Counted from the whole stretch's first letter, positions 1-21,964 are shown. The stretch: 60,986 nucleotides of DNA, filler included, from Syncephalis fuscata S228 (GCA_025786725.1; 3 parts of 3 records of this genome joined end to end with filler, not necessarily neighbours in it), one strand, 5' to 3'. Notes: generated by a model from the letters alone, not told the origin. Program-made: numbers and translations.

Positions 1-3000
1 TGAAGAAGAAATATCCGTAGTAGAGGAAATAGCGGCTAGTGAAGTAGAAGGACAATATAGTGAAGATAATGAAGAACCGTATAGTGAATATAATGAAGAA
101 CCGTATATTGAATATAATGAAGAAGAACAGTATACAGAAAGTGAAGATGACGATAAAACATCCTCTGTCATTTCTATTTCTATGACTGATATGCAAATGG
201 CTTCTATTGATTCACAATCAACATCATCTGAAAACGATAAATACAATTCTTTAATCATGGATTCTGTATCTAATACCGTAACTACTACTACTGAACAACA
301 ACAAGTAGAACAAGTAGATATTAATAACACATTATCAACAACAACAGACTCTTCTATATTATCTACTAAATTAAGTGTACCTCGTTCTCCACGTATCCGT
401 CCTCAAGCACTGACTATTGTTCCACCGACTACTGCTGCACTGTCTACACTCGATCAAATACCTGAATTCGATCTATCTTCATCTCCACCGCCTATTGTAG
501 TCAATTCATTAGATGAAGTGGCCATTAGTGTACCTCTACCCCGATCACCTCGTATTAGACCGTATTTAATGGCCGATATGGCTTCTGACACCCTTGACTA
601 CATGGAAGGAGAAGAGAACCCAGCCATTACGACATTAGAAGAACTATTTGATCCACCTCATTCACCATCTTCATTATCATTAGACCAATTAATACCCAGA
701 TCTCCTAGAATACGCCCTATATCCAACCATTCTAGTATTTGTGGTGATATTGAACCACAAGAGTTGGATGATTCAGATTTATCTTCATTAGATGGACATC
801 CGATGATGTTACCACCATCTCCATTGGTGGAACCATCGATGTTATTACAGTATAATACTATGGACCATCAAGTAGTCTATGGTAATACAAGTACCGGTCA
901 TATGATTACTGAACAGCCTGGTGTACTTTCCATGTCTATTAATGAAGGATTAAATGTGAATAGAACACGTAATTTAACGGTACATCAACGATCAGCCGCA
1001 CCTTCTCCTACTTCATCCATGGGTGGATCTCCATTATTAACCGCAACCCATACATTTGATTTCAATGTAAGTATAAGTATAGATATAATTAATTAATTAA
1101 TTAATTAATTAATAATATATAGGAGTCGGTATCTCCAGTAGAATTCATTCCAAATTATAATGTAGCCACTACGGCTAATACAGATGCCACTGCTTGGTCT
1201 GACTCATCACCTTATGGTGTTACTGTTATGTCATTGCCTTCATATACAGTTAATGATAAACAAGTAGTAACCATGAGTGAAGAGAAGATGGTATTTGAAG
1301 ATACTGATCATCATCATCATAACAATAATGGTGGTGAATTTAAACCTACAACTACAACAACAACAACTACAACAACTACATCTATGAATGGTCTAGAAGG
1401 ATATACAGTCTATAATCCATGGGAGAATGCAGTCAGTCCATTAGTACGTCCTATAGTTGTAGTATCACGTCCACCATCACCTGGATCTAATCTAGAAGTA
1501 TCATCGCCATTATTATTACCTCAATCAAGCATTGAAATAGAAGGAAAAGACAAAGAACCATATGCTGTAACCGTGCCTATTATTATTGAAGATATGAATG
1601 ATATTGAAGATATGAATGATATTGAAGATACAAATATTGATCATATTGATCAATTATCTTCTCCAGTAACTGCTAAGGCTCAATGGCACACTTCAATGTC
1701 TATTGCTACATTTGAAGAGAATCTAGTTCAAATTAAACAATCAGCCGATGAAGCAGATGAACCAGTATCTAATGAAGATGCTTCATTTATATCGAATGAT
1801 GCCTCTTCAATAGCCTCATTTAATCAAGAAGAAAGAGAAGAAAAAGGAGGAGAAGAAGAAGAAGAATGTGTCATTACGACCAATATACTAAATAATAATG
1901 ATGATGATGAACAAGTAAGTAAATAATATAATATATATAATATATATAATATACATAATATACATAATATATACTAATATACATAATATCTATTAGATTA
2001 TTGACTCTAATAATGATCATTTAATACACCATTTAACTGATCAACCAATAGATCATAGTATAAATGAATCTATTAATGAAGATAGTTCAATCAATGATAT
2101 TGTATACAAAGATACACGTAAATCAACTTTGGCCATTCTAGTAGAAGAAGCGGCATTACACGGTGGGGTCTGTGCATCAGATACTGGATCTAATAAAGAT
2201 ACTGGATCTAATAAAGATACTGGATCTAATAAAGATACTGGATCTAATAAAGATACTGGATCTAATAAAGATACTGGATCTAATAAAGATACGGAAGAAG
2301 AATCTATTTTACAAGATGAACATGAAGACAGTATAGATACACCATTTGGACATCATATGATTGCCAGTTCAACATTACAGTCTAATAGTGAATATACCAC
2401 GATGAGTACACCTCAATTAGAACCCACTCAATTACATTTACCATTACAACAACAACAACAACAACCACAACTTGAAGTAGAAGAACCAATAGAACAAGAA
2501 TCAAGTCTTAATTCTATTCTATTACAAGCCACACCATTTAATGATGACATGATAAATGGCATGTTAACTAGTATCAACCCTTCTAATATAAATACCATTA
2601 ATGAATGGCCTATATTATCTGAAGATCAAGCGATATTCTCTCCTATTTTACCGGATGAAGATGCACCTCCACCAATACTACCACCTATATCAGTAACATC
2701 GATTATAAGTATGCCACCACCTGTAGTAACCATTGATGATACAGAAGATGATATAGATATAGATAATAAGGATGTTGTTGTTGTTGATACAGATACAGAT
2801 AAGGATGTTGTTGTTGATACAGATACAGATAAGGATGTTGTTGTTGATACACTTGATACTGATACGCCATTAGATCGACGTCCTTCAGTTCATTTGGTTA
2901 ATCGATCTCATACATTTGGTGATATTCCTTCTACTTCTACTTCTACTTCTACTTCATCTTCATCTTCAACCAAACGACCTACTAAACATCAAAAGAGTAA

Positions 3001-6000
3001 ACAAGTCGATAAAAGTACAAAAGATCCATTATTAAGTAGAAATACCGATATCATCACTCCTATTTCTACTCAATGGAATGCCGCTGATTTACATCCTGGT
3101 CAAGCATTATTAACTCCATCTAATCCATCTAATCCACCATTGTCTACTACTACTACTACTACTATGACCGATACAACTACATTAACTACAATGACCCTAT
3201 TGCCTAGTCTATCTAATAATCAGAATACCAGTATTGATCCATCGGGTACCTGGTCACTTTCTAGATCACTTGATAACCATACCAGTAATACACGATCACA
3301 TCCTATGATGATATCACGATCCATGGGACATCAACGCCATAGTAGTAATAGTCATAAGGGCAGTCATGGTATTTATAGTACAAGTCATGGTCAATATACT
3401 GATCATCATCCTTATCGATCCCATCGATTCAATTCATTGGATCATAAAGTGGATCCGGATAGATTATTAGGATTATCGGCCACTCATGGATTAAGTGATG
3501 ATGGATGGTTATCGATGGATGGTAGTCGATGGATTCCCCCGGCCGATACACCTTCACTTACCAGTCCATACCATTATATGCAACATAGAGTATCTGGGTC
3601 TATTGATGATCAATATATACCTACAACTACTACTCCTACTACAATGACCACTACAATGCATTCACGTCATTTATTAGAGGGATATAATCGAGAGATCCAT
3701 TCTGTATTGGGTGGATCATTTGGTACAACCATTGGCCATCATCATCGATATGATAGTAGTATAGGCAGTCATAGTGGCAGTCATATGCATCGATCATTGT
3801 CTGAACAGTTACCTATAACATCTAATGGTATAAATACAATGACTTCTACCTCATTAATAGGTTCATTATCAACGGAAGCATTACGTAAAGATAAACAACA
3901 ACAACAACAACAGCTGATTAATAATGAAGATGAAGAGGATACTATGAGATCATTATTAACTGGTCCTCTATCTGATACGTATAGTCCATTAACTGATACA
4001 TTTAGTCTACATCTATCCCATTCATATGATAGTAATTATAATAGTCAACATCCTATGGGACATCATACCATGGATAGTATGAATAGTCATTCTACTATAG
4101 AATCTGGATCAACTGAACAACCACCACCTGTATCATCTCAAGTATCGCCACCATTAGGATTAAAAGATGGATCATCTATAGTAAAGAATACACCGCCTTT
4201 ATCAACACGTAAATTTATGCGTCGTTTATCATTTATTAATCAACAATCACCGGTAAGTAGAAATAGATGGATAAATAAATCAAATGAATTTAATGGATCA
4301 TTAATTGATATTTAATTGATTTAATTGATATTTAGGTGAGAATGGGTGGTGGTATTATGTCCTTGGATACACCTCTTGTTACTCCGGGTGATGATTCTTT
4401 TCCTCAAGAATCATATTTAAGTAAACATAAGGGAACAGTATCTAATGAACATGATGAAGAAGAAGAGGAGGAAGAAGAAGAGGAAGAGGAAGAGATTATG
4501 GATCATTCAAGTACAGAAGGGGTATTTACATTTGATAAAGAATCAACTATGACCATAAATCATACTGAAACACAATTATTAAGATCAGACGAGGTAAATA
4601 ATTAATAATTTCATTATTTATTTATATATTAATTAGTATTTGATAGAATTACTTGGCAACCACACCCATAATTCCTATTATTAATATGTCATTGAATAAT
4701 TCACCTAATAATACACAACATTCAACTTCATCCTCTCCATCTTCATTTAAAGATTCGATTCCTCCAACAAATATTAATATATCTAAATGGAGTGCCATGA
4801 CTCGATCACAATTGGATATAATTGAAGAGAGTGAACATAGTACATCAACCACGCCTAATATGGAGAAGCGATTAACATTAACGATGTCCGATCCAACGTT
4901 ATTTAACAACTTGGCCTCTCCTACTTTTGTGAATACCGCAACTGCCGCATCTTCATCGATTAATAGTCCACTTGTTAACTATCATCCCACGAGTGGAAAT
5001 AATAATGGTATGGGTGTGCCATTACTGGCCCAATTGCCATTATCGGCAGTTGGTGAGATGAATAATAATGGTAATGAATTTCCATTTAATATTCTACCTA
5101 ATGAATTGTATGAAGATAAAGAAGAGGAGGAGAAGGAAGAGGAAGAAGTAATGGATAGAATAAAGAAGCGAGTAGTTTATGAAAAGGTAAGCAGTTTAAA
5201 TAGATGATAGATAAATAGATAACTATTAATATATTTATTAATGTATTTATTAATGTATTTATTATAGGATGAGGATGATGAAGATGCCAGGTCATTTACT
5301 TCTTCTCCTTGTTTTGCCCATCAATTATCGTCACCATTTATGCCAACTATGGATTTATTTAACTCATCTCGAACTATATCCAATTCTACTCATACTTATT
5401 CTGAAATGACTACAGAAGAGGAAGAGGAGGAGGAGGAAGAGGAGGAGAAACAACACCGTTCTCTCTTTCCTATATCTAAATCTAATCATCATAACCATAT
5501 AGATCATATAACTGATATGAATATAGGACATGTCTCGAATAGAACCAGTTCTTCTAATTCATCCTCTTTATCAATGCAATCTTATGATGATAATGATGCC
5601 CATCGACCATTATCAGTTCATAGTTTAGAGAAATCGTTATTTGGTGAACATCATAGAAATGTTAGTATAAGTGGACATCATTTACATCATCCACATCAAT
5701 CACCGCCTGTAACATCACCACTATCTCATGATGAAGGTGAATCGACTCGATTACCCTCAGAACGACTTGATCCGATTAGATTTGATCTATTAACACGTAT
5801 ATCTGATCAATTGTACTCACAAGAGATGAGGAATAACTTTGGTGCCCCTACTGTATTAGCGGTAGGTTATAATCATATTGGTACATTTAATAGAATTTAT
5901 AGTAACATGGTGAATGGAATAGGTTGGTGAATGGTTAGCGATTGGTACATCGAGTGGTATGGTGGTACTATATGATCATACTCAGAATCTACGTACTATT

Positions 6001-9000
6001 CTACGTCGTAAGTTAGTTAGTGTCTATGTATAGATGGTTATTAATTAATGTATATATATGTATATATGTATGTATGTATATGTATATGATAGATACGGGT
6101 GTTGTAACGGCAGTGGCCGTGGCGGCTAATGGGTTCTTTGTTATGGCCGGATTTGCCAATGGATCGATTGTTATATGGGATGTGCGTAAAAGTGCCATTA
6201 TTCGACATATTGAACCACTACCCCTACAACAACATCATCGTAATAACAGTGGTGATTATACAGGTAGTGGGGCGAGTAGTAATGGGGCCCAATTACTTGC
6301 TTATACCGCCCAACGTATTATGAAACTATCCTCGGTCGTTGGTCGTAATACGTCAAATAGTAATGCTGGTGGTAGTGGTGGTAGTCATCATCAACGCTCC
6401 TCTTCTATACTGACGAGTCGAGCGACGATTGGACATGAATGGGGATCGGCCATTTTACATGTTGAATTTGTTGGTAATCAATCTCATGAAATTATTACTA
6501 CCGATGACCAGGTAAATTTGAATAGTATATTATATACCACGCAAATATACTGATGGATATATATATATATATGTGTGTGTGATAGGGATTGGTGTTTTTA
6601 CATCGGTTGGCTAAAGTGGCGGTTATTCGTTCAGTGGATACTTTCCATGTATTGGGTCGACGTCGTCGTAATGGTCCATTATCAATGACCGCACAAGGCA
6701 TGCAACCACCAAGACGGGCCGGTACTGTATTTAGTGTATCTTCATTATCGATGGGGGTCATACAACATCCGGCCGATACCTTTGCCTTTATAGCCATCAC
6801 CACACCGGTTAAAGTAAGTAGTCAATAATATTATTTATATTGGTAAAGGTATTTATCATGAATGTAGATGTTAATTATAAGTACGAAACCGCGTATTGAG
6901 ACGCATTTCAAAGTTATGAGATCGGAAAAGATGATGGCTCAAACGATTGAAGAAGAAGGTATAATGGCCACTTGTGGATGTACAGCTTGGTATTCAGCCA
7001 CCCTTGACGAAGGAGGTAAGCGTATATATATATATATATATATACTAGTACTAATATTATATAATGGTATAGAAGCGGCTGATCCATTACTTGCGTATAG
7101 TTGGGATCATCGATTGGCTGTATTAAGAGTTATTGGTGATTCAGTTGAAGAAAAGGAACGAGGCGGTATATTAAGACGCCAATTACCACGAATTACCTTT
7201 GTTTATGTTAATGAATGGCGTGGGCCATGTCCCATTGTAGCCATTCAATGGATGACGCGTAAAGTAAGTACCTATAGAACATATAGAATATAGAGTAAAT
7301 ATTAATATGTTTATTATTACTAGATGCTTGTTCTTTATACAAGTGAAGATGAAATGCTTGTATTTGATCGATCGGCCAATCAAGTTACTGAACGATGTGA
7401 TTTACGCGCTGTTCGACTTGTTAGTAATAATCGGTTTATGACGCCCCTTGAAGAGGATATCGATGAGAATGATGAACATTCATCTGATTTAGAACTGGCC
7501 TATTACCAAAGTGTACGATCACATAAAGGTCGAGTCTATCTACTAGTAAGTATTAATATAGCCTATAATGTTGTTAGTAATAATAATATCTGGTAGGGTG
7601 TTGATCGATTGTGGATGGGTATGCCATTGTCATGGGCAGATCGTATTGATGCTTGTGAACAGAATGGTGAACTGTTAAAGGCCATTGATATTGGTATTGC
7701 CTTAATTAATGGGGCACCCGGTCTATCAACAGTTGGATTGCCGGATGATGATCTACAGAGACGTGTTGTGGTTGGTGCCCGTTTAATGCAATTAATACGT
7801 AAAGCCACGAGTATTACCTTTGCGATTGATCGAGTGGGTGAACGACATCCGCGTAGTTGTCGTGAATTGGCCCGTGCGTCTATTGAAGCCAGTTTATGTA
7901 TTGGTATTGAATCGTTTTTATTTGATGAAATCTACGAGACATTTTGTGAACATCAGTGTAGTCACTGGTTTTTGGGTGCATTGGCCAAGGCAGTTCATCG
8001 ACGCCGTATTCATTTATTGCCACCGGTAGTGGCTCAAGATCTTATTGTTTATTTACGTGGTCAACCCAAATTACTTGAAACGATTCTATTACACCTTGAT
8101 TTAACCACTCTTGATATTGACACGATTGTTTCGGTTTGTCGACGTGACGGACTATGGGATGCACTTATATGGGTATGGACGAGGGCTGTACACGACTGGA
8201 TTAGTCCAACGGTTGAACTATTACAAGTAGCACGACAACTGGCTGGTAATTCAGAAAGACGCGTTAAAGAGATTCTCGATCAGTTACTCGCCTATTTCGA
8301 TCACGTATTACGTGGTCGTTGGTTCCCTTCACTATCGGATGAATCGTCAAACAACAATGACCATTCGGATCAACAACGAAATCGACGACATCGACCGCGT
8401 AGATCGTCTAAATCGGCCACCCGTCGTTATTGGGACGAGAAACGAGATATCATCCACGATAAGGTTATATGTCATAAGGCGAAAGCATCTATTTATCAGT
8501 TTATATTTTCATCTACGGCTATTTACTGGCCTGAACAGCCAGCACCGGGAAATCCATCAAGTGAATTGGTATTGGTTGATGGTATTCTAAAACAATCAAC
8601 TGGTTATGAAGATTTGGATGATTTACAGCCCTATCCCTATTTATCTCTGCTGCTTGACTATGATCCAAAGCGATGGCTTGATACCCTTGAACGAGCATTT
8701 AATGATGATAGCTACTTTGATTATAAAGAGCCAAAAAATGAAGCGAATAATGGTGATGAAGGCGAAGACCAAGAAAAAAGTACAGCACATACTAGACAAA
8801 CAATTGTGGATGCTCTTATTAAATGTGTTTCGCCGTATGCGCGTAATAACTTTACTACCGTGCCGGCCACCTTTGTTTGTATCTTCTTGGCCCGTCAATT
8901 ACATCAACATAGCCGACATGTTCAATTGACACCGGATACATTAGAGGCAGTATTAATTCGATTAACTACCGATTCAACAACGGCATTATACGGTGCCACG

Positions 9001-11283
9001 AGTGATACACGACAGGCAGCCGTACAAGAATTGCTTAAAGTCTACATATCACCACATACGAAACAAATGACCGAGTTATACGATCGGGCCGGTTTCTATA
9101 GAGTACTTGAAACAGTCTATCGTAACGAACATAATTACGGCAAAGTAGTTGAAACGTATTTACGTGATCCAGAACGACGCAGTCAAGTATTTGACTGTAT
9201 TCGACGATTATTAAGCGATAAAAGTCGATCAGTCGAGAAGAGTCGATTACTGCAAAAGAAACGAGCCCATGTACGCACATCGGTTATGGGACTAATGCCC
9301 CAACTGGTTAGTGTAGATGGTGCCCAATGCGCTCGATTAGTAGCCGATTTATTCGAGGATCAACATGAAGAAGTGGTAAAACTACTTGAACCTGACCGTT
9401 TCCTTGTATATGCCTACTTGCACGGTCTATTCGAAGCACGTCAACGGGTAAAACGATCTTTATTACGTAAAAAGGCTAGACAAGCAAGTGACCTAGCCAG
9501 TAGTTCACCCACCGGCATGACAGTTACTACTTCCGCCACCACCACTACTACTACTACTACTTTAATTAGTGGTCAAAAAAACAGCCATGTACTTTTGGAT
9601 GATTTCCCTGGATTACCACGTATGCTTGAACGGTATATTGAACTACTTTGTGAACGACATCCTTCATTGGTTCGAACATTCCTGGCTGATCATGAAGAAG
9701 ATGGTATTTGGCTAAATAGTGCCCTGACCGTCTGTCGTGAATACGATGTTACCGATGCCATTGTATGGATACTTGAACGACGTGGTGATCTTGTACAAGC
9801 CTTAGAGGCTATTCTTATTAAAGTGCAAGACTGTGTTATTCAAGTAACAAAACAATTGGCCCGTGATGCCATTGATCATTTTACAGATGCCGCTGCTTCA
9901 GTCGTTAGTGATTGGCAACACCAGCACCACCATCATGGATCGATTGACTTACTTGGTCGATATACACCGCCACCACGACTACCCATGCAAACCGCTAGCA
10001 CTACAACGGACGTGTATCGCGCTGTAGATGCCATTGTATTGTATTTAAGAATGGCGGTAGAGTTGTGTGAGCGCGTTAGTACACGTGTATTAACGGCCGT
10101 AGCTAATGAACGGGCACAACTTGAACACCAAAGTGAAGATCTATGGTTTATGCTACTGGTACAATTTGTAGATGCGTATCGTACATTAATGGCTGCAGCC
10201 ACTGAACATGCACCTGCACCCTCTTTATCATCTAGATCAACATCGCTAATACCACCAACGCAAGAGCCACTTGATCCATCGGGCCAAATGATACGCGGTG
10301 GCTTATACGAAAGTTTAACGGAACTATTACAAGCTACCGCATCATCCGGTGTATCGCTGCCCAAGCTGCTATTACGTCTGGTTAAATCGGACGCAGATAC
10401 TAATGAAGAAATAGCGGATGAAGAGGATGATATGTATTCTAATGAGGCGGGAACGACAACGGCCATGGCTACACCTAGACTATTTGCCGATTTACGTGAT
10501 GTCTTTTTTGGTATGCTTGATTTGTATAAATTCGAGGCCCAATTACGTCGAGTGGCCCATCGACTTATCGAATCGGATGTGTTTAGTGAAATGCGTTTAG
10601 CAGTGCACACCCGTAGTCATGGATGGCGAGCCATAAATGGCGGTGACTGTGATCGATGTGGACGTCGTCTTTGGTTAGATGCACGTAATCCATGTGCACG
10701 CGCCCCTATCAATGCAATGCAAGTATTTGATTCACCTTTACGTTGGCCACATCGCCCACAACAGCAACAGCAACAATCGTCATTGTCACTATCAAATACA
10801 ATTTCTAGATCTACGGGGGTGACGGCAAGGGCACAGGCAAAAAGAGCAATGAGTTATGATAGCCGTATGCATTCCCATTATAGTCCAGCTAATACATCGA
10901 CACTGCCCACCACAAGTAAGGATTGGGCGGTAATGATGTATCGATGTGGTCACGCTTTTCATCAAACATGCTTATTACCGACCCCGCCTATAACGACAAC
11001 GGCAAATGTACCGACATCCATCCCACCACCACCATCTATTTCTCGACAAAATTCACTAACCACTTCTATACTTACGACACATCGACTACTATCACCACCA
11101 CTATCGCCTAGTTCGTCATTGCAGCCACAACAGCCGCAACACTCCTATCCTATAAGTGAGCACCAAAGTGATGAAGGTGAAGAAGTTCAACTATTCTCTG
11201 CTTCATCACTACCTTCTGCTCAATCAAAGATGCCATGTCCAGTTTGTCATCCGCCGCGTATATTAACGCATCATCGAATTTAA
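1..11283 (+). CDS. VPS8: CORVET subunit Vps8 (multi-exon, 5' end outside window): very long disordered N-terminus, WD40 beta-propeller, helical/clathrin-like repeats, C-terminal RING-H2
   Basis: Frame is open from base 2. ORF pieces are joined by GT-AG introns. WD40-type segments (GAPTVLAV, VTAVAVAANGFFVMAGFANGSIVIWDV, AILHVEFVG). Vps8-domain text (LSWADRI, LETILLHLDLTTLDIDTIVSVCRRDGLWDALIWVW). RING ligands CDRC / CGHAFHQTC / CPVC. Stop at 11281-11283. Confidence 0.85.
2180..2290 (+). repeat. In-frame 18-nt tandem repeat (GATACTGGATCTAATAAA x6, DTGSNK) within VPS8 N-terminus
   Basis: Directly visible perfect repeat; a second DKDVVVDTDT repeat lies at ~2765-2850. Confidence 0.9.
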
Positions 11284-11419: not shown

Positions 11420-11885
11420 AATATATAAGTAGAATGAATAGAAATAATTTAAAGGCTGCCACAAACACAATTAACTGCGAATAAACAACAGTTATGAATA
11501 AAGCATATTTAATAGAACAAATACTAAAATATATGAATAATGAATTTAATGCTACAATGCATATATATATGGGTGAATAAGTAAAATAGTCGATATTTAT
11601 TAATAATACTGCTAGAACAAAAACAAATACGGCTTTGGGTAGCGGAAGACTAGGAGGGTATAGAATGATATATAAAATAATGAATGTATGGTAAGAAAGC
11701 ATATATGATAGCATGGAATAGAATGGGATGATATAGATGAATAGAGTGTATGTATACTGAATAATGAATCTATAATGATGAGTATTTTGGACCCTGATGT
11801 GAATTACTTCTTGTTTCCTGTTCAATAGAAAAAAAGTCTAATTTAAATGTATGAATGTTATTAAATGCAGTTATTTAACCACCAA
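11420..11885 (+). mobile_element. Degenerate copy of the dispersed inverted-repeat element (right part)
   Basis: GAGTATTTTGGACCCTGATGT at ~11781 and the following GAATGTTATTAAA...ATTTAACCACCAAA match the element end at 31539-31745. The spurious ORF here resembles spurious ORFs at 31222 and 33398. Confidence 0.65.
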
Positions 11886-12070
11886 AGTACAATAAATGAG
11901 TAATAAATTGCATTTAGATTACTAAATTTATTATTTAAATAGTTATATTGTATGCAATGTAATAGAATAGAAGCATATCATAGTAAAAATATAATATTTA
12001 TTGTTTTTTGTACTTTATAAACTAAATACACTAATATGAAATATTTACAAGATGGTGCCTAATTAGTTGG

Positions 12071-14695
12071 TTAGTTTACATAGCAACGACTTAATAAACA
12101 CTTACATCCATTGCTGATTTTCACTCGTTTTTCCTGAGTATCAGCAGTCATTGAATGCGACCGCTTAATACCACGCTGAGGTGTGGAAGCCTCTTGGCAA
12201 GCTGTTGTCTCTTCGGCTTCTTTGTCGTCTTCAGTTTGATTACTCTCTTGCTGTTGACTTGGTTCTATCTCGGCTTCTTCTTCTGGTAACTTCAATGCCG
12301 GTTCTTCTTGTTCTTCTTGAGTCACATCAGCTTCAGCAACCGTATCTTGTGGCTTGTTAAACCAAGAACTTGCCAATGCCTGCTCAATAGTGATACGTGA
12401 ATCGCTGTTAAGAGCAAGAAGATTGCGCACCAGTTCGCGTCCTAGTAATCAATAAATATTAGTTCTATATAATTATTGTTTGATTTATTTACCTTCTTCT
12501 GATACTGCTTCCCAAGTATCATCGAATTCCAAAGGATTGTTTAATAAATCTAGAGCATAATCCTCGACGATAACATCTTCATTACTATTTTTTACATATG
12601 GTAATGTATCTAAATATAAAGGCATTAGTAAAAAATGACAGCTTTATAATCACTTACTTGATAGCATGTAATGTAATGTAGCACCAAGGCTCCACACATC
12701 AACTTGGTGGTAATTGCTGGCTGTCAGTTCCATTGTATTCGAGGCTGCTTGCGGATTAATATCAATTTTTTTAGCTTTTGCAATTGCTAAATTTTTAAAA
12801 GCTGATTTTAGAACCATTTCTGGTGCCATATAACCTAGTGTTCCACGCTTCTTTCTTGGTGGCGGTGAATCTGGAACAATTTTCCAAGCAGCACCAAAAT
12901 CTGTAAGGACAATCGTTGGGTTGTTGATGCACTTTCGCAGCAATACATTTGCTGGCTAATGTAGACACGGTTAATTTCAGTCATTTTTAACATTTCAAGT
13001 ACTTACTTTTATATCTATTTGATAGCAATACGATTAACAATGATATTTGTTAGTAGCAATAATAAACAATTATTTCAACTTACCACAGTGAACAATATGC
13101 TTACTGTGTAAAAACTATTCAAAAGTCATTAATAAATTATTGTATTATGTTGTTACTTACCTTTACTGCTTCCAGCAGCTGTTTAAAAATGTGCCTAGCC
13201 TCATCTTCAAGAAGAGGGCCATGTTGTGCACAATAGCTGTGTAAATCTCCGCCAGCTACATATTCAAGCACCAAGTAGCTGTACATTGCTGTTTCATGCA
13301 CATCAACTACTTGAATAATGGCTTGATGTCATTGCGCCATAACAAGTATGGTGTTTTCATCAGCAAAGCTATTTATGCAAACTTCTTTGGCTGCTCCCTT
13401 GATATACTTTTTGTCGGATATTTTGATGGCAACAGGTGTTTTGTTGTTGCGTATTTCTCCATAAAATACGCTGCCAAAAGCACCACTATTTTATGTTATC
13501 AATATGTTAATTTAAATGATATAAGTACTTACGAACCAAGCCGTTGTGTTGTTACAGCATATTTGCTGTTGATTGTCTAGAAATGTGTTAGAGGCTATAA
13601 CTGCTGTAATTGTAATATTGCTGACTTACTGTGCCAAAATCAGGACTTGGATCTCGATTCTTAATGTCAACTTTTTAATCAAATATATAGCATAAAAAAC
13701 TAGTGCCATTGATTAGTCGTGATTATCATAGACTAATAAAACTTACAATTGCAACCAGATGGCTGGATGCTGCTATTATTTTTGATGACACATGTAGCAT
13801 CGGACCTAATGCTGACACCATCCACTAAATAAAATAATTAGTATTGTTTAGTAATTTATAATAAATCTACTTACCCAAAATAGAACTGGACATCAAATTC
13901 TAATTACACATTTAGCACCATTATTATTAGTATGATAACTACTTACTTTGCACATCATTATTTCATTTTCCTAAATATGGATTAAAATTAGCATTGTTAT
14001 TTTAACATAATGATGTGTGCTGCTCACCATGAATATGCTAAAATAATCGTCTTGTTTTTTCCTCTTCCTCTTCCTCTCCTCGCTCGCACTAAATATTACA
14101 AATTATTATATTAATAAAATTGTGTAATGTGTCAATCAAACCAGCAATAGTTTAGTGTGTTTACATTTGCTAAATAACAGCAAATTATGGCACAGCACTA
14201 TACCAATAAGACACCAGTATTAAACACTGCATAGCTTACCTTTCTGAGCCTTGCCCAAAAGTGTATTCTTCACCTCGCATCAAGAGGTGTTCTTTGAATG
14301 AATGGTTATTTAAATGGTCTATTAACTGTATATTTACTTACCTGTGTCGTTTTCATCCGACACCTCAACCCAGCCTACAATCTTGGCTTGCTCCGCCAAA
14401 CTCATTGCCGCCCAAGCAGCAGGGAGTCTTTCGTAAATGTCCCCCACTGAATTGTTTGGTGTTGTGAATGGCAAAGCAAGTGCAGGTAAACAAGGAGCAT
14501 CTGATGGCTGAGCCACCACACACTGCTCTTCAACAACATCTTCAGCGGCGGAACTATATTAGCTTCAGCCGCAGGCGCTAATGATGGGGATGGCGATGGC
14601 GACAAATGTGCGGGTGGATTGAATGGCAAGCGAGTGGGATTTGCAACAGATACATCAAGAGAACTACAAGCAAATGGATTACCTGGACTGTCCAT
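12071..14695 (-). CDS. CAMK-group Ser/Thr kinase with N-terminal FHA-like region (Chk2/Dun1/Mek1-like); carries an in-frame TGA and a frameshift, possibly a pseudogene
   Basis: Spliced translation gives LGSGAFGSV, VAIK, LVLEYVAGGDL, HCDIKPANVLL, LTDFG, GTLGYMAPE, VDVWSLG and RITIEQALASSWF. Upstream GEEYTFGQG ... WVDGVSI resembles a diverged FHA domain. TGA at 13329-13331; frame change near 14555. Confidence 0.7.
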
Positions 14696-16131
14696 ATTGC
14701 AGTTATGTTTTAATGTAGAGTTTGTTTAAAACTGGAATATAAATCAAAATACACGTATCAAATAATGATGTAAAACTTTGGAAAGGTCAACTACGCGAAT
14801 ACTATATTAACAACTCATACATTTATTTAATAAATAGGCTAGCAGACATGGGCGATGTGTCATAGTACATTTGAAACAGCACCATTACGACATGGCTAAT
14901 TGCGCTATGAATGTGTTTCTAAACATTTGGCTTTTTATTAATCATATGTCAGTACATGACCAATTGGCTAGCAGTTGTACAACAAACCAATAAGTGCAAC
15001 TGATTGTCAAGTTTGAAAGATGTGTTGCTGAAACCACCGTTACCGATTGGGAAACGCACTGTGCACACACGCAGTAGCACAGAGTAAGCATTTTGAGAGT
15101 TAGTTTGACCGACATTCATACGCAAATAGTGGGCATATTTTAATAAAGTTTATGCAAAATATCTGGCAATATGGATGCTACTGAAATAAATAAATTATAA
15201 CTACGTATTGAATAGACATAATATTTGTTAGCTGTATGTCGTTACTATAATATAGCAAGTTGTTTAGGAAAGTAGCCAAGTGCTAATGATTGATGCTAAT
15301 GACACTGTGTAACATGCATGGGAATATCAAGTAAATCGGCTTTACAAAAACGTTTGTTTCATAGCTAAGGCCCGAATGTATAGCTTACTGTACACACTTG
15401 CAAATTATTTTCACCAAAGATATTTAAGAATTCAGTGCAAAGTCTTTTATTTCAACTGAGTGTTATTTCAATATCGGTTAATAGCATGCATATCTTATTT
15501 AACTGTAATTTGCTTAGACATATTCCATCAGCTGATGATGATTTAAACAAGACAGCAATCTTGAGATGGTAGTATGCTTATCTTTGTGTTGCGCCATTCT
15601 TTTCACTAGCTTGCATTTTTGCTAGCACTGACATACATATCCATTGAAGAAAGCAATGAAACAAGTTCAAACTGTTTCGTAATTGTATTACCAAGATAGA
15701 TAAGCAAAACCATCATTATTTGTTCATTTACATTAGATTGGTATATTGGTAACGCAATAATCCGTATTCAACCATTTTATTTTTACTGAGTCATTGCACT
15801 GTTCAATTGAACAGATAGCGCTTTGCCTTGCAATGACATTCGCCCTTACTGAAATATACATTTATGTTACACATCACTGCATAGCACGCCTCTCTTTGAG
15901 CTGGCCTATTCTGTTTCTTTTTTCGCTCCGCCTAATGGCTTCAATTCATTGGATAATGCTGAGTGCTTGCTTCTGCACTAAACACACGCGTGTGCCTACA
16001 TAATATATCCCTCATTAAAACACGTAATCTTAACTACGCTTTTTTATTTTACATTTGTTCTTTAACTAATTAGCAGTGAATTCCACTATTCTATATGTTC
16101 ATAAACTACAATGTTTAGTGGAATTCATAGC

Positions 16132-19100
16132 TTTATATAGCACACTGTAACTGCTTGCTTGTGAAGCCATACAATATGCAACTGCTCGGCTTTATTAGAT
16201 AAACTAAAAATGATGGAACGGCGTACAGTTGGATTGAATGTGATCGACGCTCATATTATTTTGGGGATTTAATTAAAGCTGTAGACCATTCTGTTTGTTG
16301 TATGGTGGTGTTTATCTATATACGCTTGGGTGAGCGGTATAATAAGCACCATTCCTTGCCTGTGGGCAATATTAAGTACCATCATGGCAGCATCATTGTT
16401 TTAACAGTTAAAGTGCTATGATGGCACAACATCGATTTATAGTGCTATATTAATGTAGCTTCGATGCTGTTATCTTTAGTTGTCTATGAATGATGATGTA
16501 GTTGTGTTGGCTACCTAATGTCGTGACAGTGTGCTATTGTACCATCATTGTTGCATTTGATTATCTACTCGTATGTGGATGGCCTAGACGGGGTATGGGA
16601 TCAGCGTTATTGGCTGTTCGTTCCAGCTATCTAGTCAATGTATGTCGCCTGGCTGAATAGCTTTTCTGATATTGCTTGAACATAAGCAATGGTAAAACAG
16701 CAACCACGGCACATCATGATTACGATAGCTGGAGACTGTATAGGCCGGCACTGATGGGTGGGAGTTTAGGCCATCAGCATATATCAGATAGTTTATATTT
16801 AGCATTATATTTGGACTATTAAATGGTATTAGATGGCCATCTAGATTTACGAATAATACAACATAATGGCAACTACAAAAGGTAAATATAGTATATTGTG
16901 TTGATTAGTTACTAATACTGAATAACATACATATATTGATTTTATATTAATTTAATGATTTTTATTGCGTTTTTGTTTTTATTTATTTTCTAACTAATTA
17001 CTAGGCATATTACATAGTTCTATACTTTTAACTGTAATTTGAAGCACCTTTAAATATTTATATAGCACACTGTAACTGCTTGCTTGTGAAACCATACAAT
17101 ATGCAACTGCTGGCTTTATTAGATAGATTAAAATGAATGGAGTGCTGGAGCAGTAGTTTGAATCGACCACTGCATAGCATTTTAGCATTTAATTAAAGCT
17201 GTAGACCACTCTGTTTGTTGTATGGTGGTTTTATCTATATACGCTTGGTGAGCGGTATAATAAGCACCATTCCTTGCTTGTGGGCAATATTAAGTACCAT
17301 CATGGCAGCATCATTGTTTTAACAGTTAAAGTGCTATGATGGCACAACATCGATTTATAGTGCTATATTAATGTAGCTTCGATGCTGTTATCTTTAGTTG
17401 TCTATGATGATGATGTAGTTGTGTTGGCTACCTAATGTCGCGACAGTGTGCTATTGTACCATCATTGTTGCATTTGGATTATCTACTTGTATGTGGATGG
17501 CCTAGACGGGGTATGGGATCAGCGTTATTGGCTGTTCGTTCCAGCTATCTAGTCAATGCATGTCGCCTGGCTGAATAGCTTTTCTGATATTGCTTGAAAC
17601 ATAAGCAATGGTAAAACAGCAACCACGGCACATCATGATTACGATAGCTGGATACTGTATAGGCCGGCACTGATGGGTGGGAGTTTAGGCCATCACATAC
17701 ACCAGATAGCTTATATTTAGCATTATATTTGGACTATTAAATGGTATTAAATGGCCATTTAGATTTACGAATAATACAACATAATGGCAACTATAAAAGG
17801 TAAATATAGTATATTGTGTTGATTAGTTACTAATACTGAATAACATACATATATTGATTTTATATTAATTTAATGATTTTATTGCGTTTTTGTTTTTATT
17901 TATTTCTAACTAATTACTAGGCATATTCATAGTTCTATACTTTTTATACTGTAATTTGAAGCACTTTAAATATTTATATAGCACACTGTAACTGCTTGCT
18001 TGTGAAGCATACAATATGCAACTGCTCGGCTTTATTAATAGATTAGAAATGGTGATATTGGAGCAGTTGTTGAAGTCGGCCTACATTCATTTTAGCCATT
18101 TAATAAAGCTGTAGACCACTCTGTTTGTTGTATGGTGGTGTTTATCTATATACGCTTGGGTGAGCGGTATAATAAGCACCATTCCTTGCCTGTGGGCAAT
18201 ATTAAGTACCATCATGGCACATCATTGTTTTAACAGTTAAAGTGCTATGATGGCACAACATCGATTTATATGCTATATTAATGTAGCTTCGATGCTGTTA
18301 TCTTTAGTTGTCTATGATGATGATGTAGTTGTGTTGGCTACCTAATGTCGTGACAGTGTGCTATTGTACCATCATTGTTGCATTTGGATTATCTACTTGT
18401 ATGTGGATGGCCTAGACGGGGTATGGGATCAGCGTTATTGGCTGTTCGTTCCAGCTATCTAGTCAATGCATGTCGCCTGGCTGAATAGCTTTTCTGATAT
18501 TGCTTGAAACATAAGCAATGGTAAAACAGCAACCACGGCACATCATGATTACGATAGCTGAGACTGTATAGGCCGGCACTGATGGGTGGGAGTTTAGCCA
18601 TCACATATACCAGATAGTTATATTTAGCATTATATTTGGACTATTCAATGGTATTAAATGCCATTTAGATTTACGAATAATACAACATAATGGCAACTAT
18701 AAAAGGTAAATATAGTATATTGTGTTGATTAGTTACTAATACTGAATAACATACATATATTGATTTTATATTAAATTTAATGATTTTAATTGCGTTTTTG
18801 TTTTTATTTACTTTCTAACTAACTACTAGGCATATTACATAGTTCTATACTTTTTATACTGTAATTTGAAGCACCTTTAAATATTTATATAGCACACTGT
18901 AACTGCTTGCTTGTGAAGCCATACAATATGCAACTGCTCGGCTTTATTAGATAACTAAAAATGACTTCGACGGGATACAGACATTGAGCGAGATCGCGCA
19001 TAGCATTTTGGCATTTAATTAAAGTGTAGACCATTCTGTTTGTTGTATGGTGTGTTTATCTATATACGCTTGGGTGAGCGGTATAATAAGCACCATTCCT

Positions 19101-20487
19101 TGCCTGTGGGCAATATTAAGTACCATCATGGCAGCATCATTGTTTTAACAGTTAAAGTGCTATGATGGCACAACATCGATTTATAATGCTATATTAATGT
19201 AGCTTCGATGCTGTTATCTTTAGTTGTCTATAATGATGATGTAGTTGTGTTGGCTACCTAATGTCGTGACAGTGTGCTATTGTACCATCATTGTTGCATT
19301 TGGATTATCTACTTGTATGTGGATGGCCTAGACGGGGTATGGGATCAGCGTTATTGGCTGTTCGTTCCAGCTATCTAGTCAATGCATGTCGCCTGGCTGA
19401 ATAGCTTTTCTGATATTGCTTGAAACATAAGCAATGGTAAAACAGCAACCACGGCACATCATAATTACGATAGCTGGATACTGTATAGGCCGCACTGATG
19501 GGTGGGAGTTTAGACCATCAGCATATACCAGATAGCTTATATTTAGCATTATATTTGGACTATTCAATGGTATTAAATGCCATTTAGATTTACGAATAAT
19601 ACAACATAATGGCAACTATAAAAGGTAAATATAGTATATTGTGTTGATTAGTTACTAATACTGAATAACATACATATATTGATTTTATATTAAATTTAAT
19701 GATTTTATTGCGTTTTTGTTTTTATTTACTTTCTAACTAACTACTAGGCATATTACATAGTTCTATACTTTTTATACTGTAATTTGAAGCACCTTTAAAT
19801 ATTTATATAGCACACTGTAACTGCTTGCTTGTGAAGCCATACAATATGCAACTGCTCGGCTTTTATTAGATAAACTAAAAATGACTTCGACGGGATACAG
19901 AACATTGAGCGAGATCGGCGCATAGCATTTTGGGATTTAATTAAAGTTGTAGACCATTCTGTTTGTTTTATGGTGGTGTTTATCTATATACGCTTGGGTG
20001 AGCGGTATAATAAGCACCATTCCTTGCTGTGGGCAATATTAAGTACCATCATGGCAGCATCATTGTTTTAACAGTTAAAGTGCTATGATGGCACAACATC
20101 GATTTATATGCTATATTAATGTAGCTTCGATGCTGTTATCTTTAGTTGTCTATGAATGATGATGTAGTTGTGTTGGCTACCTAATGTCGTGACAGTGTGT
20201 TATTGTACCATCATTGTTGCATTTGGATTATCTACTTGTATGTGGATGGCCTAGACGGGGTATGGGATCAGCGTTATTGGCTGTTCGTTCCAGCTATCTA
20301 GTCAATGCATGTCGCCTGGCTGAATAGCTTTTCTGATATTGCTTAAAGCATAAGCAATGGTAAAACAGCAACCACGGCACATCATGATTACGATAGCTGG
20401 ATACTGTATAGGCCGGCACTGATGGGTGGGAGTTTAGGCCATCAGCATATACAGATAGCTTATGTTTAGCATTATATTTGGACTATT
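16132..20487 (+). repeat. Tandem array of five ~680-nt conserved cores separated by four ~240-nt AT-rich spacers (period 925, 916, 911, 918 nt)
   Basis: Unit starts (ATAGCACACTGTAAC) at 16137, 17062, 17978, 18889 and 19807. Similarity ends at GGACTATT ~20487. Copies are near-identical except one ~40-nt segment. Confidence 0.97.
16137..16820 (+). ncRNA. Putative large structured ncRNA (unit 1 of 5), unknown family
   Basis: No conserved ORF. At least 10 stems read by eye, e.g. 16137-16151 with 16523-16537, GCCATACAATA/TGTTGTATGGT, GGTGTTTAT/ATAAGCACC, CATCATGGCA/TGCTATGATG, ATTGCTT/AAGCAAT and CTGATGG/CCATCAG. Imperfections are mostly G-U on the + strand. Confidence 0.65.
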
Positions 20488-21964
20488 TGATGTTTTGATT
20501 TTGTACAAATCGGCACACAATTACACGATCAGTCTGCTATGCTTCAGCTATCATTTATGCTATGGTTACATATGCCAATCACTTATACAATCGTAATTAC
20601 CAAGTCTAACATGAAAGCACATGTCATATACGTTCATCAACATTATACATATTCTATGACATCAATAGCATTGTACAACAATCAATTGCAACTATTGAGC
20701 ACTTACTACACCAACTACATATGCACCTTCCATTCATTTACTACTATAAATACTATACACATTAAACACAACATTTTTTTATCTTATATCTACTACCTTC
20801 ATTGTCTCATTCATATTGATTTATAGCAGCTATATTTCAGCAATATTTATTTGTATTCATTAACGATATATCACAACTAACATTATAATATAAATAGTAC
20901 TGCAGTATATTAAATGTTTGCTGCAATGAATAGTATATATTAACAAACATCTATTGATACTATGTTATACATATTAATAGTTCAGAAATTAGCAATGCAT
21001 CTTGTTACTTGTAATACTAGTCATTATGTGTATGTCATTGTACAAATATTGTCCAAAATGAAATAGCACTAATTTCACTGTTTGACAGTATTAATAATTA
21101 ATTTTGACTAAATATATTTGCTTTGTTACTTATAAAAACAAGTGTTTAATGATTGTTACTATTGGTTTATCACCGTAGACTTTTGCCACTTTGCATTAAA
21201 TAGAGAATGGTGCTATTTGTTATACATTACATCTGAGCTACCATCTTATTATAAATTATGTACAACATTATTGATCAAATAATAAGCATTTTAGTATAAA
21301 ACTAACACGTATTGATTACAAAAACAGTGATTAACAGTATGTTAGATACATAATATAAATGAGTGCATAGAAATGGCTTGCTTTAAAGCTTTACTAGTAA
21401 CCATCTATTTTATTGTAAAGATACACGTATTTATCAGCGTGAATTGCAAGTGTTTATTATAATTAACTATTTAATTGCAGCATTATCGGTGCTATTTGCA
21501 TGTTTAATATATCTAATTTGATAACATGGTGTTTTTTTTATTATTTCCATCATTATATTACTGCTATAACTTTATTGTCCAGCATGATTATAATAAATAC
21601 TAGACTAAGCCAAGTCTATAACAATGTGGTATTCTTATTATGGCTATTACCTAGTTGTGCAATCATTATAGCCATATTACATTAATCTTTAAACATGGTT
21701 AAATAATACACATGCTAAATATTGAGATAAACTTTTCAATCTAAATGTATAAAATTATAACTATATTAAAATGCATATTATCGCTTATAAAGAATCAAAG
21801 AAAGTTTTATTATTGTGTTAGCACAATTAGCGTGCTGCCTATTTACTAGTTGCGAGCAAAAACGTTTAACAAATCAAATTAAATGTAGTTATCCAGTAGA
21901 TATTGGGGCGATAATCGCATCTATATCTAATAGAAATAGATATATTTGCGACAAATTGCCGCAA

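Follow-up and report, generated by a model that had tools for sequence, protein, structure and literature searches.

The stretch of DNA analyzed here (the window; 60,986 nucleotides including filler, made of three joined parts) comes from the fungus Syncephalis fuscata S228 (GCA_025786725.1) and carries a tandem array of near-identical units, each with one short hypervariable segment. A direct-repeat search of the window placed five units of ~918 bp, spaced at 910–923 bp, at 16030..20474 on the + strand. The whole-unit BLAST identity was 92–95%, and single-base indels made up many of the differences. When only substitutions were counted, the identity among the window units was 94–100% in the body and 96–99% in the intron, compared with 47–75% in the variable block. 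The same order was found in every copy, namely a 48-nt "leader" (81–100% conserved), a variable block of 45–75 nt, and a conserved body of 650 nt. At the 3' limit of the array, the last unit is cut ~70 nt before its exon would end and lacks a 5' splice site, and the homology to dispersed copies stops near 20474. These results bear out the preliminary description of this DNA, which had reported five near-invariant units with a single hypervariable segment. The strings quoted there were found at the positions given for unit 2 (17137–17175), unit 3 (18052–18087), unit 4 (from 18965), and unit 5 (from 19885); for unit 1, the start at 16214 was right, but the string is 41 nt long (16214–16254) and not 45 nt. 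Units 4 and 5 are indeed nearly alike in this segment, being two 1-nt indels apart, and the fixed anchors ATG..CAG..TTGA..TCG..CAT are real in the window-type units.

Parts of the region are contained in five public runs, four of which (X1–X4) were compared over positions 15700–20700 on the basis of contigs only. Two joints were detected in run X1. The joint 16879->17003 skips 123 nt, and the joint 17797->18828 skips one whole unit (exon 3); in a tandem array with short contigs, linear and back-splice joints are indistinguishable. Both have GT..AG ends and, with an offset of +2, land exactly on AAAAG/GTAAAT and TACTAG/GC, indicating that a unit consists of an exon and an intron of ~123 nt and that a + strand transcript reads through the array. 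The contig depth of X1, which is unfit for ranking expression, fell to 384–716 in the bins with introns 1, 3, and 4, compared with 1000–10800 in most adjacent bins, and was equivocal in the intron-2 bins, so that dips were present in three of the four intron-bearing bins. Thus, the array is transcribed and spliced, with canonical GT..AG introns removed in a probable RNA run. Splicing implies an RNA polymerase II transcript. Across the units, the exon module is 785–795 nt long; the coordinates of all features are given in Table 1.

An open reading frame (ORF) scan found no ORF longer than 52 amino acids (aa) on the + strand of a unit. The ORFs common to copies were only 20–50 aa long, their frame shifted among near-identical copies, and none was conserved on either strand. 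The exon has no coding potential. The preliminary description had itself raised the alternative of a variable peptide encoded by the segment in a conserved frame, considered here as a short peptide on one strand or the other. An ATG on the + strand and a CAT (ATG on the − strand) bracket the segment in the window-type units, and some copies have a − strand ORF that extends into the leader, which would be consistent with a peptide. However, the frames are lost between near-identical copies, the dispersed classes have no ATG and have stops in all frames, and the splice orientation, together with the G.U asymmetry described below, indicates a + strand RNA, in which stops interrupt all frames of the leader. 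This alternative is largely refuted, and we consider it very improbable.

To define the copy family, a 70-nt probe taken from the stretch of highest conservation was searched against the whole genome assembly (29.4 Mb in 371 contigs; positions 1–27176 of the window correspond to C7:1–27176), and 40 copies were found. Window-type arrays were present on three contigs, with five units on C7, four on C329, and three on C335, and the remaining ~28 copies were single or paired, with a body identity of 72–77%. The C335 locus (C335:38080–46000) is a 98% duplicate of window 11500–21200. The starts of contigs C337 and C182 are identical, as are those of C33 and C345, and stretches that are 98–100% identical lie on different contigs. 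The assembly thus contains recent segmental duplicates or unmerged haplotigs, suggesting that some "copies" may be alleles or haplotigs and that the independent loci are fewer than 40. Several candidate identities of the family were rejected. A subtelomeric siting was considered since many copies lie <10 kb from contig ends, but telomere repeats were present at 0 of 20 ends. A long terminal repeat (LTR) element, a short interspersed element (SINE), or another transposon was dismissed, as no transposon ORFs occur nearby and the copies form part of larger, kinase gene-containing segmental duplications. A spliced-leader RNA was not supported, as there is no splice donor after the leader.

To characterize the structure of the exon, 18 diverse copies were aligned (alignment A2), and a consensus was calculated with RNAalifold. 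The consensus fold contained 212 pairs, with ~95% of the cells paired and 27 pairs with compensatory changes. Its energy was −280, compared with −160 ± 7.6 in 25 column-shuffled alignments (z −15.8). The reverse-complement alignment reached only −182 with 151 pairs, little better than the shuffles, and the G.U cells of A2 outnumbered the A.C cells (649 versus 76), indicating that the constraint acts on the + strand RNA and not on DNA palindromes. When the 3' partners were slid by 1–3 columns, 30–52% of the cells were paired, and 8–12 compensatory pairs remained, compared with 27 in the original register. Exon 2 folded singly gave a minimum free energy of −245 kcal/mol (z −5.2). The exon therefore has a conserved, strand-specific RNA fold that is supported by covariation and by energy beyond the shuffled controls.

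The fold consists of a 12-bp closing helix and three long arms. In the closing helix (A2 columns 16–27/422–433), 98% of the cells are paired, with A/G changes opposite U, and the helix ties the 5' leader to a site ~380 nt downstream. A TATA-like motif forms one strand of this helix and is thus not necessarily a promoter; the reading of TATA box plus leader as a promoter was rejected, as the motif is transcribed (loose end at 16149) in addition to being part of the helix. Arm 1, which bears the variable segment at its tip, is ~140 nt long. The 19 pairs of its lower half are 98.6% paired, compared with 18–53% when slid, and nearly all the changes there are one-sided and wobble-compatible. In arm 2 (alignment A5), 13 of 48 pairs showed compensatory changes. 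The AUGAUGA of the body was considered as the C box (RUGAUGA) of a C/D box small nucleolar RNA (snoRNA), in which a terminal stem unites C box and D box (CUGA). It covaries with its pairing partner as one strand of the 35-bp arm-2 helix and is therefore no C box, and the C/D reading was rejected, with snoR14 at 15.8 bits against a cut-off of 40. A search of the whole window against the 4227 families of Rfam 15 gave zero matches at the gathering threshold, and the best scores of a permissive search were 15–18 bits against cut-offs of 40–139. No H/ACA, C/D, or microRNA (miRNA) family was matched at either threshold, H/ACA and miRNA families having been named as analogies in the preliminary description. 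Metagenome pattern scans for the conserved motifs found no relatives, and a full-text literature search found nothing comparable. We conclude that the exon is a previously undescribed large structured RNA, multi-copy, 0.8 kb in size, expressed, and spliced.

Table 1. Positions of the exons, introns, RNA helices, and variable tips of the array and of the adjacent kinase gene, counted from the first nucleotide of the window.
Feature	Position	Strand	Remarks
Exon 1	15882..16881	+	5' limit is the coverage of an X1 contig (15882–16160), start at or before 15882; 3' end from the joint and AAAAG/GTAAAT
Intron 1	16882..17004	+	123 nt, GT..AG, CTAAC-like branch motif; X1 joint
Exon 2	17005..17799	+	795 nt; one complete structured RNA module
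Intron 2	17800–17920	+	equivalent of intron 1; splice motifs in every unit
Exon 3	17921–18705	+	module copy
Intron 3	18706–18829	+	as intron 2
Exon 4	18830–19624	+	795 nt; module copy
Intron 4	19625–19747	+	as intron 2
Exon 5	from 19748	+	module copy of the last, incomplete unit
Closing helix, 5' strand (AUAGCACACUGU)	17062..17073	+	unit 2; pairs with 17443–17454 (ACAGUGUGCUAU)
Arm 1, unit 1	16166–16306	+	per-unit folds
Arm 1, unit 2	17091..17226	+	bears the variable tip; per-unit folds
Arm 1, unit 3	~18008–18141	+	per-unit folds
Arm 1, unit 4	18918–19051	+	per-unit folds
Arm 1, unit 5	~19836–19977	+	per-unit folds
Arm 2	17284..17441	+	rod, main helix 35 bp, rich in G.U pairs
Arm 3	17483..17705	+	rod of ~77 bp; apex UUGCUUG-AAACA-UAAGCAA, not hypervariable
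Tip, unit 1 (type 1)	16210..16254	+	also in C335a, C335b, C329a, and C329b, with 3–17% differences
Tip, unit 2 (type 2)	17133..17175	+	also in C329c
Tip, unit 3 (type 3)	18049..18087	+	unique in the assembly
Tip, unit 4 (type 4)	18961..19001	+	sequence read in the window
Tip, unit 5	19881..19923	+	type 4 with two 1-nt indels
Protein-kinase paralog	12000..14700	−	divergent from the RNA gene, starts ~1.4 kb apart; ORFs

The variable tip, which makes up the distal 45–75 nt of arm 1 at the outer edge of the fold, is not reliably self-paired. The placement of the segment at the apex of the longest hairpin, as first described, was confirmed by the per-unit folds and by the consensus fold, and so was the picture of a constant scaffold with a variable apex, in that the scaffold fold is supported by covariation and the apex is hypervariable across the 40 copies. 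Over 15 copies, the z score of the whole hairpin ranged from +1.3 to −3.2 (mean ~−1.3) and was significant for units 1 and 2 and not for the others. When only the tip was shuffled, the mean z was −0.55, with significance solely for unit 2 and class D. Good pairing was found in the unit-2 tip (hairpin z −3.15; −2.8 under tip-only shuffling), and classes C and D fold as two small hairpins. A well-formed tip hairpin under selection was rejected on the mean of the tip-only shuffles, and palindromes that could serve as kissing loops or nuclease sites were not enriched in the tip (5.6 nt versus 5.4 nt expected).

More than 15 tip types were distinguished among the 40 copies, and at least two of them are present in X1, the run that also has the spliced joints. 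The type-4 tip of unit 5 recurs without substitutions in an X1 contig and with two substitutions in a contig of X4, a run labeled "DNA?" as a guess. These recurrences bear on the possibility that the variants reflect errors of assembly or consensus calling in a repeat that was collapsed or mis-polished, which would be in line with the many single-base indels between the assembled units and with the contigs that resemble duplicates or haplotigs. Tip types recur not only in contigs of the independent runs X1 and X4 but also in the C335 and C329 arrays, and the dense substitutions are limited to 40–75 nt, unlike polishing noise. The variants are thus real, and an artefact can hardly be the explanation. 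As a separate observation, two X1 contigs agree with the unit-2 tip over its 5' half and, from window position 17154, run into ...AGCCAACAACAACAAAACAAT, a continuation that is absent from all assembled copies and may represent an unassembled copy or a chimeric transcript.

To quantify the hypervariability of the tip, the sliding nucleotide diversity was calculated. Among the window units, the diversity was 0.30–0.40 in the tip and 0.00–0.09 in nearly all of the exon, rising to 0.10 at its 5' edge. Family-wide, the tip reached 0.30–0.47 in two copy groups and 0.20 in a third, compared with mostly 0.00–0.10 in the exon. Furthermore, 63 copy pairs whose nonexonic flanks were <=12% divergent were compared. 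The tip was 29% divergent, compared with 3.6% for the exon and 2–4% for the flanks, and it was more divergent than both flanks in 56 of the 63 pairs. The tip divergence was bimodal (~0–20% or 30–55%), suggesting that tips come in types.

The clearest case was provided by two duplicates, C370:1–4027 and C305:57542–61577, which are 98.8% identical. As many as 31 of their 48 differing columns fall inside the 70-nt tip, whereas the remaining ~3960 nt hold nine substitutions and one 8-bp indel. Point mutation since the duplication cannot explain this pattern, which points to the exchange of a patch. In the copy C370a, the tip belongs to class C and the flanks are identical to those of a class B copy; at a finer scale, the tip is itself a mosaic, with a class D-like 3' half in a class C frame. 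These results show that the tip is swapped as a discrete cassette between conserved flanks. In addition, the CpG observed/expected ratio over all copies was 1.25 in the tips and 0.45–0.71 in the exon remainder, with GC contents of 0.44 and 0.39, respectively; the CpG excess of the tips fits GC-biased conversion at a hot spot. Neither an initiating nuclease or conserved break site nor a hierarchy of silent donors was identified. A second mosaic patch was noticed just 3' of arm 1 (A2 columns 190–215, ~16307–16325 in unit 1; L046, L047, L049). It comprises a 7-nt insertion (GTGTATG) and clustered changes, is common to C370a, C370b, and C305a, and is absent from C130, C199, and C197.

We propose that the array represents serially duplicated exons of a spliced, noncoding + strand transcript. 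Each exon of 785–795 nt folds into the closing helix and three long imperfect duplex arms, and the tip of arm 1, at the periphery of the fold, would accept nearly any sequence. The tip would then be replaced as a cassette through short-tract conversion among family members, with the rest of the unit left near-identical, and a locally raised mutation at the tip probably contributes as well. A tolerant tip combined with short-tract conversion would explain why the tip behaves as a cassette, why mosaics occur, why CpG is in excess, and why no targets were found, as reported below. We give this reading, of structured-RNA exons with a tolerant arm-1 tip diversified by short-tract gene conversion, a probability of roughly 0.55. 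The tip diversity would then stem chiefly from recombination at a site that accepts change, possibly with some selected specificity; the tip would not be a programmable guide that has its own effector, and the scaffold would act as a structural or protein-binding RNA.

Several points weigh against this reading. No identical donor for the C370a tip is present in the assembly, so the conversion is deduced from mosaicism and was not observed. Within the window-type arrays, the presumably neutral introns are 96–99% identical, whereas the tips are 25–50% divergent, which makes simple relaxed constraint insufficient, and something must create or preserve diversity specifically at the tip. Hypervariability is absent from the arm-2 and arm-3 apexes, so a generic argument that hairpin tips are free, or that palindrome centers break, is incomplete. 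The anchors TTGA..GATCGA persist in all copy classes, and C-G/U-A swaps between units in the stem directly under the tip hint at function. With regard to expression, X1 is an RNA run by guess and not on record, and its joints are supported by contigs with short sides of 21–23 nt. Variation restricted to the arm-1 apex, tips that are distinct despite alike introns, and retained anchors keep a selected role in specificity alive.

Such a role forms the principal rival to the conversion reading. The tip could serve as a module that confers specificity, whether as a guide, as a kissing-loop partner, or as an element for protein selectivity, so that every scaffold copy would bind its own RNA, DNA, or protein partner. 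Diversifying or balancing selection would maintain the diversity, with exchange making new specificities. The tip is ~8x more divergent than the neutral-looking flanks and 10–20x more divergent than the introns within arrays, and this variation, limited to one of three apexes, speaks for a selected module, as do anchors that alternate with variable blocks, more than 15 types recombining as mosaics, and the presence of at least two types in a run with spliced joints. Against it stand the searches for targets. When 60-mers centered on four window tips were searched against the genome, only paralogous units matched at E<=10, and no complementary site of ~18 nt or more was found in the genome, seeds of 8–14 nt and foreign targets being outside the reach of this search. 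In the remainder of the window, the longest sense or antisense matches to the tips were 9–12 nt, at the shuffled level (mean 10–11), in agreement with the earlier statement that the segments have no match elsewhere in the window. The absence of an adjacent effector gene, also stated earlier, was confirmed: no recombinase or other effector gene adjoins the array, the neighbors of which are a protein kinase paralog and genes without a Pfam match. The exon has no features of a known guide-RNA family, and the lack of palindrome enrichment speaks against kissing loops. Consequently, the proposal in the preliminary description that each unit specifies a different target or gives rise to a different small RNA is unsupported, though not refuted, and no sign of a programmable guide with a dedicated effector was found in these sequences. 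Overall, we regard selected specificity as a possible but rather unlikely explanation of the tip diversity.

A second rival holds that arm 1, perhaps with the other arms, is a Dicer substrate, and that the array is the precursor of polycistronic hairpin RNAs or miRNA-like RNAs whose tips give copy-specific small RNAs. The arms are long imperfect duplexes of 55–77 bp, and the tandem units share one spliced transcript. The genome also encodes three Piwi-domain proteins and one protein with two RNase III domains, so small-RNA production is possible in principle. However, the stability of the arm-1 hairpin is modest, and some classes form two small hairpins instead of one. The arms are conserved over their full length with G.U-rich covariation, which is typical of a structural RNA and not of a precursor with conservation limited to the mature duplex, and the loop-proximal tip is usually discarded in Dicer processing. 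We therefore judge a small-RNA precursor to be improbable.

If the tips do confer specificity, the family could represent large structured RNAs of a new class that carry a swappable "address" cassette. The conserved three-arm scaffold would provide one activity, and the arm-1 tip, exchanged and made mosaic through gene conversion among the ~40 copies, would set what each copy recognizes. We put this forward as a distinctly unlikely idea. The addresses might be own or foreign transcripts, chromosomal sites, or markers of self versus nonself, and the system would parallel, at the RNA level, the cassettes of antigenic variation or mating type and amount to a new programmable-RNA design in a eukaryote. 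If the tips confer no specificity, the family would instead offer a clean recombination hot spot of ~70 nt inside a conserved RNA gene, as well as a warning that a guide cannot be deduced simply from the combination of a constant scaffold and a variable patch. In either case, one genome with one scaffold and more than 15 tips amounts to a natural experiment, and to our knowledge, large RNAs with covariation-proven folds are rare beyond the classic ribonucleoproteins.

With regard to the genomic setting, the gene upstream of the array is identified as a kinase by a match to Pfam PF00069 on its paralog in L032 (5640–8283). The head-to-head pairing of kinase and RNA gene recurs at several other copies, as judged from homology of the 3-kb upstream block, and the two genes appear to have been duplicated jointly as a block. 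The nearest other identified gene, ~5 kb upstream of the array, encodes the C-terminal 1224 aa of a fungal Vps8, a CORVET subunit, with a fungal-type RING (7609–11283, +). Its closest relative among 5.8 billion proteins was a metagenome sequence of 49% identity, suggesting that the lineage is poorly sampled. Farther upstream, window 182–5930 holds a run of ORFs with low-complexity sequence and short tandem peptide repeats, such as six copies of DTGSNK at 2179–2292 and poly-T, poly-Q, and poly-E tracts; the ORF at 2129–4312 had no Pfam match. Elsewhere in the genome, an 18-aa repeat (KSKEDDQVANNKKAKQAL) occurs seven times in a 316-aa ORF that is located at 994–1944 (−) of L032 and adjoins the copy C370a.

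The array was finally compared with known systems. It shares a constant fold with internal variable patches with H/ACA snoRNAs and with IS110 bridge RNAs. An H/ACA snoRNA (120–250 nt, a hairpin-hinge-hairpin-tail fold with H and ACA boxes and a guide pocket) was rejected, as the exon is 795 nt long and spliced and snoR83 scored 16.9 bits against a cut-off of 40; moreover, the variable patch of the exon sits at a helix apex and not in an internal pocket or loop. An IS110 bridge RNA was likewise rejected, as no recombinase gene is adjacent and the host is a fungus with spliceosomal introns and not a prokaryote. The primate C19MC and fish miR-430 clusters are polycistronic miRNA host transcripts with repeated units, and like them, the array has tandem units of 0.5–1 kb, one spliced noncoding transcript, and a unit-specific hairpin sequence. 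Unlike in these clusters, the hairpin of the array is exonic rather than intronic and only modestly stable, and the structure is conserved over the whole 0.8-kb unit and not over the hairpin alone.

The variable peripheral helices of rRNA, RNase P/MRP, and telomerase RNA resemble the exon in having a conserved core and tips that are free in sequence and length. In the exon family, however, the variation occurs among paralogous or possibly allelic copies of one genome, reaches 30–55% in the tip with flanks at 0–5%, arises by patch replacement, and is confined to one of three arms. The yeast MAT, Neisseria pilE/pilS, and Borrelia vlsE systems also have a variable cassette within conserved flanks and short-tract conversion from family members. 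They differ from the array in that its cassette is 45–75 nt of a noncoding RNA helix tip and not protein-coding sequence, that no expression site/silent-donor hierarchy, nuclease, or break site was identified for it, and that its palindromes are not enriched. Finally, the NORAD repeat units, the Xist A-repeats, and Drosophila hsr-omega represent long noncoding RNAs built of tandem structured modules, and the array is similar to them as a spliced, noncoding polymerase II transcript of tandem self-folding modules. Compared with these RNAs, it has a module of much greater size (0.8 kb) that is base-paired almost throughout, an individual exon and intron for each module, ~28 single-module copies scattered over the genome, and a single helix tip that is hypervariable and swapped like a cassette.

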